Origin: Utricularia gibba
Taxonomy: Eukaryota; Plantae; Magnoliophyta
DNA length: 64,000 nucleotides
NCBI GenBank assembly: GCA_002189035.1
Contig: CM007989.1
Location: 1,488,001-1,552,000, forward strand
Reading direction: 5' to 3'
A model generated the notes under the pieces. The model worked only from the letters and a program-made list of their open reading frames with translations, ran no database searches and was not told the origin of the DNA. Shown here piece by piece: positions 10,298-56,709 of this stretch. Made by a program: the position numbers and the translations under genes. Position 1 is the first letter of the stretch. Each line of letters begins with the position of its first letter.

Positions 10298-11907
10298 ATG
10301 GCTGTAGCCATTGATCAGTGCCAAGGTTTTGTGCCATTTGTACGTCCCCCAAAATGCAAGCTTCCATCTTTCACCCAACTCGACTACAAGATGCTCAACT
10401 TCAGTCAACCCACGCATGCACAATCATCAGAACATGAGTTATCTTTCAGCACTGTTCATCGGAGTGTCTCCACCCCGTGTCTCTCTGAGTTTTCTCTGCT
10501 GAAAGATAGTGGCACCAGTTTTAGAATTGATATAATAATTGGGCATGGTGCACCAAGAGCACGAGCACTTGTTGTCGAAGTTGCCATGGCTATGGCCTCT
10601 GGCATAAGTCCCGAGCCAACATCAAGCGGTCTTGGTGGTGCTTATTTCCTTCGTGCCCCAAATGGCGATGCTATTGCTGTTGCAAAGCCAATAGATGAGG
10701 AGCCTCTAGCATTCAACAACCCAAAGGGTTTGGTTGGACGGATGCTAGGCCAACCAGGATGAAATGCTCGATCAGAATCGGTGAAACTGGTCTTCGGGAA
10801 TCAGCTGCCTATCTCCTTGATCATAATGGTTTTGCTGGTGTCCCTCCTACAGCATTAGTCAGATTCTCCAATGTCAAGTTCAATATGAATAACTCATGCC
10901 CTGATTCACCCCCTATTCACAAGATTGCATCTTTGCAACGGTATGTGCATCATGATTATGATGCTGGTGACTTGGGCCCTTCAAGCTTCTCAGTCACTTC
11001 TGTACATCATATTGGTATTCTTGACATAAGGCTGATGAATCTTGATAGACATGCTGGAAATATTCTTGTAAAAAGAGGACAGGAGAGTATTGGAGGGGGA
11101 ACAGCTGAGCTAGTTCCAATAGATCATGGATTCTGCTTACCCGAATCCCTCGATGGTCCATATTTTGAGTGGCTACACTGGCCTCAAGCTTCTCTTCAGT
11201 TTTCAGATTCTGAGATTGAATATATATCCAATCTTGACCCTGAAAAGGATGCTGCTCTGCTAAGGACCGAGCTTCCTTCAATCGGCGAGTCCTCCATCCG
11301 GGTTCTGATGGTCTGTACAATCTTCTTAAAGCGAGCAACAGCCTCTGGGCTGTGTCTCGCTGTTATAGGAGAGATGATGACCAGAGAGTTTCATGGAGGG
11401 CAGGAAGACCGTAGCATGCTGGAGCACATCTGCATCAATGCTAAAGCCAGTTTGAAAGCTGCACTAGCTGAAACTATTGGTATGGACAATCAGCAAGAAG
11501 ACAACGATGAGGTAATGTTCCATTTCGAAGATGAGCCGAACTATGGAGCACCCGAGATCTCTTCCAATCCTTCGAGCATTCTGCGCCTTCCATCCATGAG
11601 CATCCTCAATGATTCCGCACTATTTACCCTCACCAAGAATGAACTTGGTTCAGCAACTGATCAGACTATGAGCATGAGCTGCTCTGAAGGAGAAGAGAAC
11701 ACCAAGACAGGGGGCATGATGAGGAGCATAAGCTACCAGCTGCCGAGCTATGGCCATGAGAGTGAATGCATTTCTTTTGGGGACATGGATGATGAAACCT
11801 GGCTACTCTTCTTGGAGAAATTCGAACAACTTTTGCCAGAGGCATTCGAAGAGCAAAAGGCGATCGGCTTCTCAAGGCAAAGGCTGGGTTCTTCCTGTGA
11901 GTTCTGA
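10298..11907 (+). CDS. Type II phosphatidylinositol 4-kinase gamma (gamma1/gamma8-like); one apparent 1-bp frameshift at 10757-10759
   Basis: MAVAIDQCQGF start and GGAYF...AVAKPIDEEP in ORF 10262-10762; LDIRLMNLDRHAGNILV and LVPIDHGFCLP in ORF 10759-11907. The conserved junction GQPGMK is restored by one base. Confidence 0.9.
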
Positions 11908-19568: not shown

Positions 19569-21090
19569 TCAACGCAAGGTGGTGTTGCAGTCTGGCCAGA
19601 AGCTCTGCCACTTTGCAATCTCTTCTTTCTCATGAATTTTTCTGATTCCACCGTAAAATCCAACGCCCTTGCTTCCAACCTCTCCCTGGTGCTTCGTGTT
19701 GAGCTCCGTTCTCCGCCACCGGGATTCCGATGCGTACTGCCGGAACTCCAACACCACCGTATCTGCATCAACATGGTTAGCAGCCAACAATGCACTTCAG
19801 GCTCACATCAGTTGGCCAGGTAGAAGGAGATTGAGGAAGAGCTACCACTGATATGGCACTGGCAAGTGAGGGTGTTCCCAGAGCAGGTGTCTAGATGGCC
19901 AACAATTCCATACCACCAACCTGCATGTGCAATGCCATCAATATGGAGTGTTGCGCGAGAAAACCAGATCCCATGTTGGATCTGATCAGAATGTGAAATG
20001 TACCATAAGGGAACTGTGGGTTTTTTCTCCACTGGATTTCAATATGATCATCTGGATTCAGCTCTTCCAAGCAACGGGAGATATGGACAGCACTTGATGG
20101 AACATGAACAGGGGGGCATCTGATCCTGTGCCACTTCACATCATCTTCTATCACGCTCCTCCCTTGGCAGGGATACCTGAAAAACGACAGTGTAAAACTG
20201 AATGCAAAACGCATACAAGAACTACCCTTGAAACTGTAATGTCCAGTTTTTACCTAGCGATGAAACTGTCTGCTGCTGAATCATAACATAGCAGAGCATC
20301 ATAGCATGAAAGAGAGAATCCCAAGTATCCATTCTTCACCTAAAAAGGATCTCAGGGTGGTTGATCTTTCTATTCATAATATGTGCTACAGTGCATACAG
20401 AGCAAGAGTTACCTCACGGTCATGAACCTGAGCTGGGAACCAAAACTTTCCTGTCTCAAGAGCAGCATACAGAGAGAGAACTGAATTTCCCATTGAAGTG
20501 CTTCTTGACTCACTACTTTCTTTTTTCTCATGTCTCGGTTTGCGCACAAAGAAGCTACCCAAGGGAAGTAATTTAGATCTGCAGCTTTGTTGCTTGCAAT
20601 GCGGAAGTTTTGGAGACCTGTTGGAGGAAATATAGTTTCCCCACTGTTTCCAGGCGGCTTCGCCAAAAACTCCTCCCCATTTCTTTTGGAAGTGTTTCTC
20701 CCACACATAATCGCTACTGCATTTCTCTCCGAGTGAAGAGCAAACCAATGAAAGGACACAAAGATCTGCCGGGGAAAGCTTCTCAAGAATGCAGCCCAGG
20801 ACTAAATCAGGCAGATCCAGGAGAGGAACCTCATTTTCCTTCACAATACCATTAAAAATCTCAAATCTTGGTCTCACAGGTGTATTCTCCAATGGAAATT
20901 GCCTAGGAACATCAAGGATTCCTTTTAAAAAACTTCTCTTCCGACCCAAAATCTTGTGAAATTCCTTCAAAATGATGAAAAGAATCCTGGGAAATGCCCA
21001 CATTCTTGAATGCAGCATTGCAATAGGCTGGGCTTTGATGGACTTAGAAAGCAACAAAAAAGACAGGAAACCCAACAAGAAAAGAAGCAT
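19569..21090 (-). CDS. F-box protein (At2g32560/At2g26850-like), about 5 exons
   Basis: N-terminal hydrophobic segment, F-box LLDLPDLVLGCILEKL, then FWFPAQVHDRE|NGYLGFSLSCYDALLCYD, DHIEIQWRKN, WWYGIVGHL, DTVVLEFRQY, GFYGGIRKI. Confidence 0.88.
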
Positions 21091-21919
21091 TGCAGGTTAC
21101 TGTGGATCACACATTACAGCGTAAGATAGAACCGTAGAAGGAAACGAAACAGCGATGCGCCCAAACAGCAGAATCAGCACATGAAAAATCATACAAAAGA
21201 AGCGCTGTCAGTACAGCTGACGACCCCATTAAATAACCGCCAAACGAGTACAAAGAGCCCAAACTAGTGTACAGTAGAGCATTAAAAACGTAGAATGATG
21301 AAGTACATACAATAGAATCCAAAGGAGAAATAGCGAACTACGAAAAAACAAGCCTTTCAGAACATTTTACATCAGCAACCAAGTGGCAAGAAGCATTTTT
21401 TCAGCACAAGTCAGAGAGCTGCAGTGGTGAAGTTCTAGGAAAGAGTAGAAATGGGTTATGGGCACACTTTTAATTGCTTTGCCCGGTAGGAAGATGCTTC
21501 AGCAATTTAATGGAGAATGGTTGCTCGTTTTGCAGTGAAAGATGCGTGTTTCTTTTATATCCTGGTGCTGAAATTGTCAATGTTGCTGCTATGGGAAGCC
21601 ATCTAACTTTTACCAAACTTTTGAAGAAGGGAACAGGAGAGGTTCAGTGGACTAAGATCTTTAGACTAATGTACATCAACGCATTAGATGCGCTGAAGTT
21701 GTGGTGTAGGCCAACAACATGTCACCTACTTGCCACTTTCCATTAAAGTTGTGGTGGAATTTGGGAAAGAGGAGTTGGAGCAATATATCGTTAATTCATG
21801 TTTCCAGAAGCTTCCAAGGTTCAACAGAGGTACTCGAACTAAGTTACACAGATGGCCAACGTTACATGACAGAAACCAGAAAACTACTTCATTACAAACA
21901 GGGGAACGCCTTAAGCGTA

Positions 21920-40730: not shown

Positions 40731-43224
40731 ATGGCCGCAGCCGCGATATGGCCCATCGGCCTTCGCTATGGTGTCAAGAACATCCAGCCGTCTCCACCTC
40801 CAAAACACATTCGGTAAAGTTGCCGAGTCGACAGTACCTGTTTCTGTTGGATTCGAATTTTTTGTGTAGATTCCTCTGTTCTTTCTGAATATGGTAGGAC
40901 TTTCAACCTCATTCACACGAATCCCTTTGATTTTGCTAAATTGTGTTGAATAGTAGAATTTCTTGGGAAGTTATGATCCTTTGGGAACCGGTGAATGTGC
41001 TTCTGGGTTTACTTAGAACCCGGTAGCAGTTCAAGAATATGAATTGATCGATTAATTAAACTCTCGTGAGTGTTTTAAACTTTGCCACCAAATGAATTAA
41101 TGCATGGCTTGTTGATGCACTCATGATTCTTGTTTCATCGATACTCCTTTTTGTGTTTTGAAGGCCGTTCTGCCAGAGAATGTACTTCAATAGTACATCT
41201 CTAAAGCACTTAGGCTGTGTAACAGAGAACCGAAGGGTATTCTTGAGGTGTGCATCCGAAGATGCTGCTCATACAGATGAAGTCATAGGTGGAACCACAC
41301 CTAAAGGAATTTTAGTGTGGAGAGCCATCAAATTGCCTATGTATACCGTTGCATTGATTCCTTTAACGGTTAGTCATCAAGTCAGGAACTTTTGGAGATA
41401 CTGCTATGTTAACATCTTGAATTGGAATCTATGCAACAAAATTTGATGCCGAAGTTTTTTTTTTTTTTCTGACGTAAAATCTGCAGATAGACTAGTGTCA
41501 TGTAGGCTGAAGCTAAACATTTAAGCTGAATTACATTGGCTTGTTTGCTTGTGTTATAACTATTGATCCATCAAACAGGTAGGCAGTGCAGCAGCTTATT
41601 GGCAGATGGGGCAATTCTTTGGAAAACGTTTCCTGATCCTATTGGTTTCTTCAGTTCTTGTCATAGCTTGGGTCAACCTAAGGTTAGCAAGCCAAGTTTC
41701 ACATGCAATGTAAATTTTAGGATGCATTCTTTTCATGAGTGTTCTTGTTGATGGCTTCAAGATCCATTCATGGACAGCAACGATGTCTACGATTTTGATA
41801 CGGGAGCAGATCGGAATAAGAAAGAATCTGTCGTTAATCTATCTGGAGGGTGAGAAATCTGTGTAAATGGATATTATCTCCATTTCTGTTACGTTATTCA
41901 TGTTGCAGCACATAGCGGCATTTTCCTGAAATTAAGTTTAAATTTTGCAAAACTGGTTTTTTGAAGTCGAACAGGGCCATTCGTTGCAGCTTGGTTGCTA
42001 CTTGCAATTGGATTCGGTGGCCTTGGCTTTGTGGCTGCTGAGGCTCAAAGCCGTCTTTCTATACTTCTCCTTTCTTGCTCCATACTCTGTGGCTATGTTT
42101 ATCAGGTATTCTCGATTGCGTTTTGACTTGAAGATCTTATCAACTGATGTATGATTCCATGGATGCTGCCTTCCTTCAATTGTGGCAGTGTCCACCTTTT
42201 CGTTTGAGTTACCTTGGATTGGGAGAGCCCTTATGCTTTGCTGCATTCGGGCCATTCGCCACCACTGCATTTTACATGCTTCAGTCTGGAATGAGGTTCC
42301 GACATATCATTTTCTTCAGTTAACCCCAAAACTTGATGTTAATTCCCCTGATTCATTCTGCTCTGTTAGCAGGGAGGTTCCTGTTTCTAGCACCATCGTC
42401 TCTTCATCATTTCTCGTCGGTTTAACAACAACTCTGATCCTCTTCTGTAGTCATTTTCACCAGGTTGCTGCCCTAACTTATCCCTTTGTATTACTTCAAA
42501 GAATCAGGCTTTTTGAACTGTAACTCACTTGTCATTTAACTGACAACTTCTTCAGATAGATGATGACAAGGCCGTCGGGAAAAACTCTCCCCTGGTAAGT
42601 GCAGTGACAGGAAAAATGTACTTAAAACCAATTTAAAAAACCTACATTCATTATTGGACCAGGTAAGGCTTGGAACTGAAAGAGGTGCTCAAATTGTGAA
42701 AGTTGCTGTTGGAGCCCTGTATTCTCCTCTATTGTTCCTTGGGCTCAGCCAAGCTCTTCCCATCCTATCCATTGTAAGGACCCTTCTTCCCATTCTCAAC
42801 TCTGAATTCCAAAAATTGCCAAATTACAGCAGGGTTCGCTATAGTCCTTCAACACTAAATAAGCATTGGCCTGCCTCAGGTTCTGTGTTCGTTAACACTT
42901 CCTGTTGGGATATCAGTTGTCAACTTTGTACAAGAAAATCACAAGGTTAGTAAGAGTTTAAACTTGCTTCTGTGCAATAAGCAAGCCCTTTCATCTCTTG
43001 CATCCTTCTTTTGATCTTGAAAATTGGCACAAATGATTGAAATGCAATAGGTGTCTCGTTGTATTGACGTTCTCATGCTCACAATGCAGGACAAGGAAAA
43101 GATCTTCAAGGCCAAATACTTCTGCGTAAGATTGCACACCATTTTTGGAGCTGCATTGGCTGCGGGCCTTGTGGCTGCCAGGCTCTTTGCAAGAAAGAAA
43201 CTTCCTCATGCCATTGTTCTGTAG
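40731..43224 (+). CDS. ABC4: 1,4-dihydroxy-2-naphthoate phytyltransferase (phylloquinone biosynthesis, UbiA family), multi-exon
   Basis: LVWRAIKLPMYTVALIPLT, SNDVYDFDTGADRNKKESVVN, CPPFRLSYLGLGEPLCF, LILFCSHFHQ|IDDDKAVGK, KIFKAKYFCVRLH; the exons I traced are in frame. Confidence 0.93.
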
Positions 43225-51121: not shown

Positions 51122-53347
51122 ATGGCGTCTATTAACAACTTTTGCTCATTGAGAACTTCTGCTGCAAGTTCTCGGTGAGAATGATTATCATCTTTTTTTT
51201 GGCTATTGAGAATGTAGATGCATTGCTTGCTGATTCTTTAGCTTTTTAGATGGCGAAAGATTGGTTCCTTTTGCATGTCCAGAAATTCTAGATGAGTATT
51301 AAGATCCTCCATATACATGATGAAATTTTGATGATTTTGTTCTTTGGATGGTTGAGAAATACTGCAATCTGTATTCGTTCTAATCATTTTTTTGTGGGGG
51401 TGCAACAGGAATCTCTGTGTGGTTAAAAATCACATTGGGAGGGTCAAGTCAATTCCATTCTCTTTTGGAGGCAGCCATGTCCCTGTTCCATCAAGAGTAG
51501 GATTGTGGCAAGTGCTGCACTAGCTGGAGCGGATCTGCAGCCCAATTCTATGTTATTAAATGTTTTTGCAGAAGAAAATAGTGATGAAATGGACTTAGAC
51601 ACTCCAACAGAAGGATTCTCATCGGTTTCTGAGGCAATCGAAGACATTCGTGCAGGGAAGGTGTGCCCCACGTACTGTTGCCAAACTCTGTCAAAAAATT
51701 CCTTACCATGGATTTTGCAACTGTCTTGATTGCCGGGTGAACCAGTGATTCTTGTTCATAAACTGTTTCAACTGTCACTTATTGTTATGTATAATGCTGC
51801 AGATAGTGGTAGTTGTAGATGATGAGGATCGAGAGAATGAAGGTGATCTCATAATGGCTGCATCCAAAGTTACTCCGGAATCTATGGCGTTCTTCGTGAG
51901 GCATGGGACAGGAATCGTTTGTGTTAGCATGAAAGAAGAGGATATAGAGAGGCTTCAGCTTCCCATGATGGTAAAAAACAAAGAAAATGAGGATAAGTTC
52001 CGCACCGCTTTCACAGTTTCAGTGGTGAGCTATTCAGGATTAAAATATTTCCTGCTGAACTTTCTTCTTCAGATCAACAATTTATGGTTGAGATACAACT
52101 GCAGGATGCAAAACATGGTACAACAACTGGTGTTTCAGCACACGACAGAGCAACTACAGTTTTGGCCCTTGCATCCAAGAGTTCTGAGCCAAAGGATTTT
52201 GTGCGGCCAGGACACATGTTTCCTTTGAAGTACAGAGAGGGGGTGTTCTAAAAAGAGCCGGCCACACAGAAGCTGCAGTAGACCTGGCTGTGCTTGCAGG
52301 GCTAACACCAGCCGGAGTTTTGTGTGAAATTGTCGATGATGATGGTTCAATGGCAAGGCTATCTAAGCTTCAACAGTTTGTCCGGCAAGAAAGCATGAAA
52401 ATCATATCTATTGCCGACTTGATAAGGTAGCTTCATCATCCTGATATAAAACCAGTTTACTGAGATGAGCCACTTCCTGTTTCTGCACCTCAAATTGGAG
52501 CTAGAAAATGTTTTGATGGCTTGCAGATACCGGAGAAAGAGGGAAAGATTAATCGAACATGTATCCACTGCTCGTATTCCGACAAAGTGGGGGCCGTTCA
52601 TGGCTCATTGTTACAAGTCAGTTTTGGACAACATTGAACATATAGCAATGGTGAAGGTCAGTGATACTTGTTAGTTTGTCTCTTCCATATTGGTTACATT
52701 TCCTCTAACCCTTCAAATGTGTTGTTATTTCACTGATGAATGACTTGAAAACAGGGCGATATTGGTGATGGACGAGACATTCTTGTTAGAGTTCACTCTG
52801 AGTGTCTCACAGGAGACATATTTGGATCAGGTAGGTGCGACTGCGGAAACCAGTTGGCGCTTTCCATGCAGAAACTCCAGGATGCAGGCCGTGGAGTTGT
52901 AGTCTACCTCCGCGGCCACGAGGGAAGAGGGATCGGATTAGGCCACAAACTCCGTGCCTACAACCTGCAAGACGATGGCCGTGACACCATCGAAGCAAAC
53001 GAGGAACTGGGCTTGCCCATCGATTCCAGAGAATACGGAATTGGAGCACAGGCACCCCCTCACACCCTGATATGAAATTACTGTGCAACAAGCGAGTAGG
53101 CATCTGTCTTACTTTACATCCTGTGTTGCAGATTCTGAGGGATCTGGGAGTTCAAACCATGAAGCTGATGACAAACAACCCCGCCAAATACAGAGGCCTC
53201 AAGGGCTATGGCTTGAAGATCAAAGGCCGAGTACCGCTCATTACTCCGATCACCCCTGCCAACAGGCGGTATATTGAGACCAAACGCATCAGAATGGGAC
53301 ACATTTACGATACAAACACCGATATTCCTCAGACACATAGCTCATGA
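51122..53347 (+). CDS. RIBA1: Bifunctional DHBP synthase / GTP cyclohydrolase II (riboflavin biosynthesis), plastidial; apparent 1-bp frameshift at 52239-52243
   Basis: [36 protein letters not shown](G)[35 protein letters not shown] (three Zn cysteines intact), [17 protein letters not shown]. Confidence 0.93.
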
Positions 53348-54033
53348 AACGCCTCCATTCATGAGATGACACACATTTCTTATTTGAAGTGATTCTTTTT
53401 CACACCCCCAGTGCTTATGCTCCCTCGAAGAGCAGAGCCCATTCATGCTGAAAGGAGGAAGCAGGTGTTCTTCTATCGTCTGGTACATTGTACTGCAGTT
53501 TTTCTTGGATACAATGGGGATTTGAGAGTACACATGACATGGTGTCTAATTTCATGCAGTACAGTTGGGGTGTACGTCTACTCAGTGAGCATCATGGCGT
53601 GCGAGTTTTCATCATATTACGTGAATTTACACGAAATTGGATAGATGTCGGGACTCTATTCTCGCACCCCCGCAACAAAAGTCAACTCCCCTAAAAGAAA
53701 AAAGGACAAAATGTCAAACGCGAATCTGGACACCCACCGACACTGCGTGGAAAATAAACTACTAAAATAAATAAAAATACTCAGATTCCCTTTGCGTGCT
53801 TAGAAATATTTAAAACATTAACCTGGATCATTGTTGTTGTTTCAAAATCCAATTCAATTTTTTTATAAAAATTAAATTATAAAGTGAATTAATTAGAATT
53901 AAGTTCTAAAAATTCAACTCACCAATCATTTTTCAACGTGTGCCTGCTTCCGGCCTATAAATAATGGCCGGGGGATCAAAAGCCTCTCTCGTGTCTGAAA
54001 TCCAATCGGAAATCGAGGTGTGGAGTAAGTTCG

Positions 54034-54267
54034 ATGGCGAGAAGCGGGCACGCATCGGTCGTAATACTTGCAATCCTCATCGGACTGGCGGCCGCGGCCG
54101 GCCACGAAATGGGTTCTCCGTCTATGAGTCCCATGCCTCCTATGCCTATGCCTATGCCTATGCCGCCCCCGCCGCCCCCTCCGTCTGGCAGCCCTGCTGC
54201 TACCGGAGTCGGGGTTTCGATCGCGGCAGGCATCGTCATCGCATTCGCGGCGGCGCTGATGGCCTGA
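54034..54267 (+). CDS. Small secreted, probably GPI-anchored arabinogalactan-peptide-like protein with a Met-Pro repeat
   Basis: 77-aa intronless ORF with a signal peptide, GHEMGSPSMSPMPPMPMPMPMPPPPPPPSGS core and hydrophobic C-terminal tail. TATAAAT at 53956. Confidence 0.8.
   Translation: MARSGHASVVILAILIGLAAAAGHEMGSPSMSPMPPMPMPMPMPPPPPPPSGSPAATGVGVSIAAGIVIAFAAALMA
54139..54162 (+). repeat. (CCTATG)4 coding microsatellite producing the Pro-Met repeat
   Basis: Read directly in the ORF at 54034-54267. Confidence 0.9.
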
Positions 54268-55007
54268 ACTCCGACCACATACCTCTCTATCCATCTCTGT
54301 CTCCAATTTGGTTTCAACTCCTCCACTTCCAAGTAATAATTAATCCATGTGTGTTGGTTTTTTTTTTTTTTTTTGACTTTGAAGATGCATTTCATGGATT
54401 CGGTGTATTGTATTCCTTGTCGCAAAGGATCTTGAAAGGAGCGAATTGCACTCCACATGTTATAAATTATATTACCGATGACATAAACTCGAAAATAATT
54501 CATTTATATAATAAATGCAATATATTAAAAATGATTTTATGTTAAATAAGGGTATCATAATTATCTACATATGATAAACAATGACATAAAAATCATAGAT
54601 AAGATATTTCAGTGATTTTTTTATTTAAGTCTTTATATATAGTGAAATATAAACCTATGTATTGAATGAAATTTTTTAATTATACTATAAATCATTACAT
54701 ATGAATATTTTAGCAATATCATATATAACATTCAATTGCAAACCCTTGTAATACGATAGATAATTCCTTTTTCAATACTATTTCTTATAAAATATAGTTA
54801 CATTTTTTAACTCATTCGTTTTGATGTAAATTAGTTTTATATACATTTAATATTGTATAAATTAAAACATGATATATAACATGTCATTTGTATTTATTTA
54901 TGTGGTATGGCGCCTGCTTGATCGTTACTTAAAATTACAGAGGGTGTGTGTGTGCTTGATCCATCTCCTTTATTCATTGGAGCTTTAGCGAAACCCGAGC
55001 TGGGGTT

Positions 55008-55354
55008 CTAGCGCATGCAGCACCGCGAGCACCTCTCGCGTTCCGCCGGGAAACGTTCACCGCAGCACCTGTAGCATCTCACGCGGGCCAGTATGAAGCA
55101 GGTGTAGGGACGACAAATGTCCACTCCCGACTGCTGGGTCTGGTACTCCGACTCGACTCCGATCTGGGCTGAATGCACTGTAAAAAGAAGAGCGTAAGCA
55201 CTTGGAAATTCTACATGGGGTTTATGGGAAAGGAACAGCAGACGAATGGCTCACATGGATCAACGAGAGTACCCTCCAGCTCTCCGGCGGAGGCGAGAGA
55301 GAATATCAGGAGCGCCGCCGCGGCGGAGAAGAGAAGCAGTAGCTTGGAATCCAT
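55008..55354 (-). CDS. 83-aa secreted cysteine-rich peptide precursor (8 Cys), 2 exons; family not recognised
   Basis: Exon 1 55273-55354, 95-nt GT-AG intron (phase 1, ending tttttacag), exon 2 55008-55177; 252 nt in total. Translation MDSKLLLLFSAAAALLIFSLASAGELEVHSAQIGVESEYQTQQSGVDICRPYTCFILARVRCYRCCGERFPAERERCSRCCMR*. Confidence 0.82.
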
Positions 55355-56709
55355 TTTGGGAGCTTCGTTGCAAGGGTTCATCCCTTTGTAGAAGGGCACA
55401 CGAATCGGAGCCCGACACCGAGTCAGGGATTGTGTGGACTGCTTTTGAGGTGTCCTTCCCGTGTCCTTCCGAGAGTCGAATTTTCTCCCCTACTTCTTTG
55501 ACTTGATCTGTCTATTCATCTCACTCCACAATTTTGAGCAATTTAATACATTATCTTAATATCAAACTGAACCATTTAATAGATTGGGATTTTTATACAA
55601 TTATTAAGTATAATTACATAAAATTCGGATTTTTTTAATTTTTATAAAAATAATTAATTCAAATCTAATTAATCGTAAACTCGAGTTAAAATTTAATGTT
55701 CAATGAATTTTAAAATACTGATTAATAAGTTTGTTACGACTTCACCCGAGTGGAAGAGCCCACCGTGACAAAAAAGGTTGGGGATAAGGCACACGACCCC
55801 ACCTGGTTCTTCACTGTCCAAACGGGGCTGGGCAGGCGGGCCTGATTATCGGATCAGCGCAGACCCATGCCCCTTTAAAAAATTAATTTCTATAATTTAA
55901 TATGAACATAATAATAGTAACATTATTATTATTTCTTTTTACGCTGAGCCTTCACCAGTATCCTCCTCCATCGAACCAAAGAAGACTAACTGCGGCAGCT
56001 TCGTCCTCAATAGATCCCACGAGCACTTTAGTTGATGTGCTAGCTGCAGAACTTTCTCGTGTCAAGATATTGGTGCCTAATAGGAGCAGAATGGTTAATT
56101 CCTTGGTTAATATTTAACCGGAATGCTCGTCTGAAGGTGAAAGTAGCAACCTTTTTACAGGCTTGTGGTTGCGGACAGAGTAAAAGTTAACACTTTTCAA
56201 CTGGTCCCAGATGCAGCAACTAGACGATGGTGTTAACATCCGTACGAGCTCAAGGCATCTCATCCACGTGCTTCATTCAAGCGACAACAGTTGTAGCTTT
56301 GATTCCCAACCTTAGAAAACATTATCTTCTGGAATGATTAATGCACTATGAGCATGTGGCGCTTTGGGGCTTTGCCCTACAATGGTTGGTGTGGGCTCTG
56401 TGATGTATTGAGGATGTAAAGTATTGCATTCATGGAAGACACACTGGGTTGGTCCAGTAAGCAATGCATGGGTGAAGGATTTTTCTGATAAGACTAACTA
56501 ATTATTCCCTTGAAAAAGACTAGATTCACTGCCAGAGCTGATCCAGAGTTTGGGGTCATGGAAGTTAGTGGGATTCCTCCCACGTGGTGTTGTTCCTCTT
56601 CCATACATTGCTCCTTCATGTACAACTTCCCATCACATACATTTGTTCACCTTGTTGCTCAAACCACCCCAAAACGCTTTGCCAGTTTCTGCATCCATTC
56701 TTATTCATC

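Follow-up and report, generated by a model that had tools for sequence, protein, structure and literature searches.

Plant annotation often misses small secreted cysteine-rich peptides, which have been the source of many defense and signaling molecules. The locus described here raises the question of whether such a peptide is encoded, in two exons, within a 64-kb stretch of Utricularia gibba DNA (64,000 nucleotides, analyzed as a whole and referred to below as the window), and to which known peptides it might be related. The original prediction held that the listing of open reading frames (ORFs) had missed an intron-split gene, and this proved correct, as the listing breaks the locus into a 62-aa ORF that continues beyond exon 1 into intronic sequence and a GTG ORF of 56 aa that corresponds to exon 2. 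The proposed joining of 55273-55354 to 55008-55177 across a phase-1 intron was reproduced on the minus strand, and the resulting gene model is composed of the following features.

55273-55354, minus strand: exon 1, 82 nt (27 codons plus one base), with the start codon at 55354-55352
55286-55354, minus strand: predicted signal peptide (residues 1-23), placed by the simple -3/-1 rule
55178-55272, minus strand: intron of 95 nt, GT...AG, phase 1, 44% GC
55008-55177, minus strand: exon 2, TAG stop included
55116-55177, minus strand: exon-2 part of the acidic Gln/Glu/Ser-rich spacer, net charge -3
55011-55115, minus strand: cationic Cys domain of 35 aa, Cx4Cx7Cx2CCx10Cx2CC followed by Met-Arg
55008-55010, minus strand: TAG stop codon
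54969-54974, minus strand: AATAAA, a putative polyadenylation-type signal ~35 nt past the stop

Exon 1 (62% GC) contains the signal peptide followed by the first residues of the spacer. The predicted leader consists of an MDSK n-region, a hydrophobic core of 17 residues (mean Kyte-Doolittle value of 2.6), and an ASA/G cleavage motif, and the start codon at 55354 is found in a good context (caaaATGG). The 3' end of the intron shows a pyrimidine tract, TCTTCTTTTTACAG, followed by CAG at 55178; the last base of the intron is the same as the last base of exon 1, so that 55011-55178 on the minus strand translates identically to the spliced exon 2. The predicted precursor is ~83 aa in length, of which ~60 residues would remain once the 23-residue leader is cleaved after Ala23. 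Sequence beyond the AATAAA element (54974-54969) is very AT-rich, at 22% GC.

The layout put forward at the outset, with a leader, an acidic Gln/Glu spacer, and a cationic domain, was recovered in full: the spacer has a net charge of -5 across the 25 residues counted from the predicted cleavage site, and the Cys domain contains nine arginines and has a net charge of +6. The eight-Cys frame also matches exactly, with the cysteines at exon-2 residues 22, 27, 35, 38, 39, 50, 53, and 54. The stated length of 34 aa needs correction; the domain is cationic and Cys-rich as described, but spans 33 aa from the first to the last cysteine and 35 aa when taken to the C terminus.

Two elements of the model, the splice donor and the translation start, each have an alternative in the same frame.

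55253-55254, minus strand: alternative donor GT (CAT/GTGAGC), in-frame and sharing the acceptor, giving a 77-nt phase-1 intron
55379-55381, minus strand: upstream in-frame ATG, 27 nt upstream of 55354, which would add nine residues before MDSK

We take the donor at 55254 to be about as good as that at 55272, by a hand estimate against the plant donor consensus. Its use would lengthen the spacer by six residues and would leave the Cys domain unaffected. The context of the ATG at 55381 is poorer than that of the ATG at 55354. TATAAAA at 55597-55591, ~240 nt upstream, is the sole TATA-like element, and a promoter at this position would place short upstream ORFs in the 5' leader.

The neighbors of the peptide gene are plant genes, and the surroundings are gene-dense. 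A bifunctional riboflavin gene (51752-53347, plus strand and thus opposite in strand to the peptide gene), whose DHBP synthase and GTP cyclohydrolase II domains are encoded by different exons, faces the peptide gene tail-to-tail at a distance of ~1.7 kb from its 3' end. Two overlapping opposite-strand ORFs of 175-193 aa at 53964-54545 gave no Pfam match and hold a microsatellite-like stretch that translates as AYAYAY or as GIGIGIG, depending on the frame. Rather than a gene, this segment is probably intergenic or part of the 3' region of the riboflavin gene. An NPH3/BTB gene (56.5-58.9 kb, plus strand) stands head-to-head with the peptide gene, ~1.1 kb apart (55355-56500), and the two may share a bidirectional promoter region. 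A cytochrome P450 gene is found at 61-63 kb. The PORR-domain ORF at 774-1817 is most similar to proteins of Sesamum (73%), Paulownia (72%), and Orobanche (69%), with Genlisea at only 61% and no self-match, and together with the neighboring genes it points to a Lamiales host.

Relatives of the peptide were sought exon by exon, with exon 1 and exon 2 as separate queries. For exon 2, hmmscan against Pfam-A returned zero families at E up to 10, and a word-index protein search, which covers kin of 31-98 aa, gave no candidate; the same type of search with the 80-aa stop-free frame at 55011-55250 (minus strand), scored on residues 25-80 (kin of 44-140 aa), also gave no candidate. phmmer against 1.84 billion representatives yielded 0 matches at E up to 1e-3, PDB sequences showed no match at E up to 10, the ESM Atlas contained no neighbor of either the whole of exon 2 or the Cys domain, and a JGI metagenome scan found no locus. 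Paralogs within the 64-kb window were not found by tblastn and Cys-frame regular expressions, and the literature on the Cys order and on the CSRCC and CYRCC strings provided nothing useful. These blank searches are weak evidence, because the Cys domain is 33 aa long, small cysteine-rich peptides (CRPs) often go unannotated, and the protein collection does not include the host species. At the level of sequence comparison the peptide is without a detectable relative, which is not equal to being without a relative. The earlier suggestion of a possibly undescribed family goes further than one sequence and searches of such low power allow.

The original prediction set the peptide apart from defensins, thionins, GASA peptides, LTPs, and hevein-like peptides, and we concur: exon 2 drew no profile match from Pfam at E up to 10, and on this ground we rejected defensin, thionin, snakin/GASA, nsLTP, hevein-like, and other Pfam-modeled plant CRP assignments. 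The predicted misfit to α-hairpinins and lybatides was likewise upheld by their published motifs, which differ from Cx4Cx7Cx2CCx10Cx2CC. The α-hairpinins (EcAMP1, VhTI, Tk-AMP-X2, and MBP-1), many of which are cationic and antimicrobial, are like the present peptide in being short plant peptides with a helix-loop-helix arrangement that places cysteines on facing helices (a predicted arrangement in our case). Their four cysteines follow a CX3C-Xn-CX3C motif and are paired C1-C4 and C2-C3, whereas our peptide has two C-x2-CC triads and two further cysteines. With no CX3C pair in the Cys frame, the α-hairpinin assignment was rejected; the PDB searches returned neither a sequence match nor a fold match. 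The lybatides of Lycium barbarum, at ~32-33 aa, share with the peptide a length of ~33 aa, a set of eight cysteines that includes two adjacent pairs, and a helix stapled by cystines (modeled in our case). They are anionic (pI about 4), form a single helix from a precursor with a C-terminal tail, and have the order C-C-C-C-CC-CC with the spacing C-x3-C-x3-C-x2-C-x9-CC-x3-CC; the peptide described here instead has the order C-C-C-CC-C-CC, a net charge of +6, two predicted helices, and an N-terminal spacer. The lybatide assignment was rejected on the differences in Cys order and charge.

The closest documented look-alike, compared by pattern, is the Cys tail of the GRP3-type class II glycine-rich proteins (GRPs), and in this respect the original comparison with known families was incomplete, as both this tail and the MxSK leader had been overlooked. 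In Brassica rapa, the GRP3-type proteins (Bra013175, Bra013176, Bra021675, and Bra040764) start with MASK, followed by a Ser/Glu/Gln-rich spacer of the SESE..Q type and then by glycine repeats. Their C terminus is a six-Cys C-x3-CC-x6/7-C-x2-CC segment followed by the conserved S/A-Y-A-G-E-x-V-Q-T-Q-P (SYAGEAVQTQP). Class II GRPs are defined in part by GGxxxGG-type glycine repeats that separate the leader from the Cys tail, class I and class II GRP genes of Brassica have one or two exons, and the Cys-rich C terminus of GRP3 (34 aa) has been reported to be necessary for WAK1 binding.

Several elements of this architecture recur in our peptide. AtGRP3 and the Brassica proteins are, as the peptide is predicted to be, small secreted precursors with an M-x-S-K leader; an acidic Ser/Glu/Gln spacer is positioned behind the leader in both, and the C-terminal Cys-rich domain ends in C-x2-CC in both, the GRP3 tail being of similar size at 34 aa. 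The pentapeptides CSRCC and CYRCC are also common to the Brassica GRP3-type proteins and the peptide, as low-complexity matches. The peptide differs in that it has no GGxxxGG repeats, with four isolated glycines in the ~60-aa post-leader product, and no SYAGEAVQTQP tail, ending instead in Met-Arg. It has eight cysteines versus six in the GRP3-type tail, its first Cys unit is C-x2-CC versus C-x3-CC, and its inter-unit loop is 10 versus 6-7 residues, leaving the final C-x2-CC as the only unit in agreement when the two are compared by pattern. Furthermore, arginine is abundant in the Cys domain, in contrast to the Gly/Tyr-rich tail of GRP3. Because the features that define membership are lacking (the glycine repeats and the six-Cys tail), we have not placed the gene among the class II GRPs, an assignment also contradicted by the absence of the conserved tail sequence and by the differing number and spacing of the cysteines.

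In keeping with the likeness to GRP3-type proteins, PF07172 (GRP) alone among Pfam families was returned with exon 1 as query (E up to 10), through a weak, sub-threshold N-terminal match over profile positions 1-27/30 (E values of 0.54 and 0.23; 11.4 and 12.6 bits against a cut-off of 30), and extension of exon 1 to the ATG at 55381 abolishes it. This score is far below the cut-off, and signal peptides in general hold little information. Descent from a GRP stock appears to be the most likely origin of the gene, with a likelihood that we place somewhat short of an even chance. The main alternative is that the locus is a real gene for a secreted Cys-rich peptide of independent origin, having arisen de novo or diverged beyond recognition, and that its likeness to the GRPs reflects low-complexity convergence. 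Such an origin is in keeping with the blank outcome of the sequence, feature, and fold searches, with a GRP leader match that is not significant, and with a Cys spacing unlike that of the class II GRP tail. It leaves as coincidence that an MxSK leader, an exon 1 with GRP as its sole Pfam family, an acidic SE/Q spacer, and a terminal C-x2-CC unit are found together, and we consider it rather unlikely.

Base composition and sequence signals bear on whether the locus is a functional gene. The exons have a GC content of 61-62%, compared with 44% in the intron, ~50% in the putative UTRs, and 22-33% in the flanks. By codon position, exon GC is 77% at the third position (GC3), 58% at the first (GC1), and 51% at the second (GC2), and GC3 likewise exceeds GC2 in other coding ORFs of the 64-kb window. 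Stop-free 35-aa segments with at least eight cysteines were observed twice in the six frames of the window, against 0.1 expected from 40 Markov simulations, and those with at least seven cysteines number four; Cys density by itself is unusual, and neither unique nor decisive. The gene call follows from the combination of this density with the hydrophobic leader ending in ASA/G, a canonical intron of the required phase, a GC island with GC3 bias, the caaaATGG start context, and the AATAAA element. Taken together, these features indicate that the locus is probably a real, unannotated two-exon gene for a secreted Cys-rich peptide, whose expression we infer.

It is improbable, in our assessment, that the locus is instead non-functional, whether because its parts fell together by chance, because it is the relic of a decayed gene, or because its transcript is untranslated and keeps an open frame by luck. 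Such a locus would account for the failure of the searches to recover a homolog, for the two donors of equal plausibility, and for an in-frame ATG upstream with possible upstream ORFs, and Cys-dense stop-free segments do exist elsewhere in the window (four with at least seven cysteines). It would not be expected to present two exons that coincide with a GC island and a strong third-position bias, set against an AT-richer intron and flanks of 22-33% GC, with both exons free of frameshifts and stops, a textbook AxA cleavage motif, an intron in the phase needed to join the leader to the Cys exon, and AATAAA downstream of the stop.

Other Cys-dense segments of the window were noted in passing. The stop-free segment at 10579-10683 (plus strand) has 7 Cys in 35 aa, ends in CYCCC, and is found just upstream of a PI3/PI4-kinase ORF (10759-11907), of which it may be an N-terminal Cys-rich exon of the palmitoylation type. 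The segment at 21009-21113 (minus strand), stop-free and hydrophobic with 8 Cys in 35 aa, is located at the upstream edge of an F-box ORF (20386-21090), and that at 43113-43217 (plus strand), also stop-free, has 7 Cys in 35 aa and contains CIGCGPCGC.

The Cys domain of the peptide contains an internal repeat, each copy of which is positioned in one of two predicted helices.

55062-55085, minus strand: repeat copy 1, R-x-R-C-x-R-C-C, in predicted helix 1
55017-55040, minus strand: repeat copy 2, R-x-R-C-x-R-C-C, in predicted helix 2

The two copies are identical at 6/8 residues and 19/24 nt; among 5000 composition-preserving shuffles, 12 attained this identity. AlphaFold2 was run twice on single sequences without an alignment, once with exon 2 and once with its last 38 residues, and both runs gave the same two helices, predicting a helix-turn-helix with helices at exon-2 residues 32-42 and 44-55. 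The block-mean pLDDT of the best model is 79-88 over the Cys domain, and the mean pLDDT among the five models spreads widely, from 46 to 80. Foldseek against the PDB with both models found nothing above noise, the top row being a Cys-lined copper storage protein with an E of 8.5, far from significant. A wide VIA-align comparison matched generic helices, with a top Z of 3.0. The cysteines at i, i+3, and i+4 bring three thiols to the same face of each helix, which would allow disulfides to cross-link the helices. In the model, as many as three disulfides could join the two facing Cys triads across the helices, and the two N-terminal cysteines would presumably bond to one another or to a triad cysteine. 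The two helices that AlphaFold2 predicts fit the helix pair originally proposed, which would be stapled by disulfides. It is very improbable that the peptide is instead a metal-thiolate peptide that binds copper or zinc through the facing-helix triads in the secretory pathway or vacuole. The CxxCC triads along one face of each predicted helix and the copper storage protein in the top Foldseek row would suit this role, but that fold match is noise, the signal peptide would direct the peptide into the oxidizing secretory pathway, where cysteines present in even number normally pair, and plant metallothioneins are not known to carry a leader.

The explanation that we favor, at slightly better than an even chance when taken as a whole, is that the locus is a real gene for a secreted, Arg-rich helix-pair peptide, a glycine-less offshoot of the GRP3 type with an apoplastic role. 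The leader would take the precursor into the ER, and cleavage after Ala23 would leave ~60 residues. The C-terminal 35 residues would fold into a disulfide-locked, Arg-rich antiparallel helix hairpin built from the two R-x-R-C-x-R-C-C repeats, and the two N-terminal cysteines would hold in place the loop ahead of the helix pair. The acidic spacer may neutralize the Cys domain in transit, or it may be removed. By origin, the gene would derive from a stock of secreted glycine-rich proteins, the glycine repeats being absent and the C-x2-CC unit duplicated. The peptide would probably act in the apoplast, either as a cationic defense peptide that could bind anionic membranes or pectin, or as a ligand of a wall-associated kinase ectodomain, as does the GRP3 tail. 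Counting the charge in its favor, we lean slightly toward defense over a receptor ligand. A reading that goes further, in which the peptide represents a lineage-restricted, undescribed family with a new fold class (a symmetric R-x-R-C-x-R-C-C hairpin with three or four disulfides), derived from a GRP3-type gene and arrayed in the genome for defense or secretion, is possible though doubtful.

The gain is incremental, in that the peptide is one more lineage-specific CRP until its expression and activity are shown. If expressed, it would add an eight-Cys scaffold in which two CxxCC units are carried on facing helices, distinct from both the α-hairpinins and the lybatides. It would also be an example of a GRP3-type gene cut down to its leader and Cys tail, the part reported to bind WAK1, and would allow the function of this tail to be tested on a minimal natural peptide.
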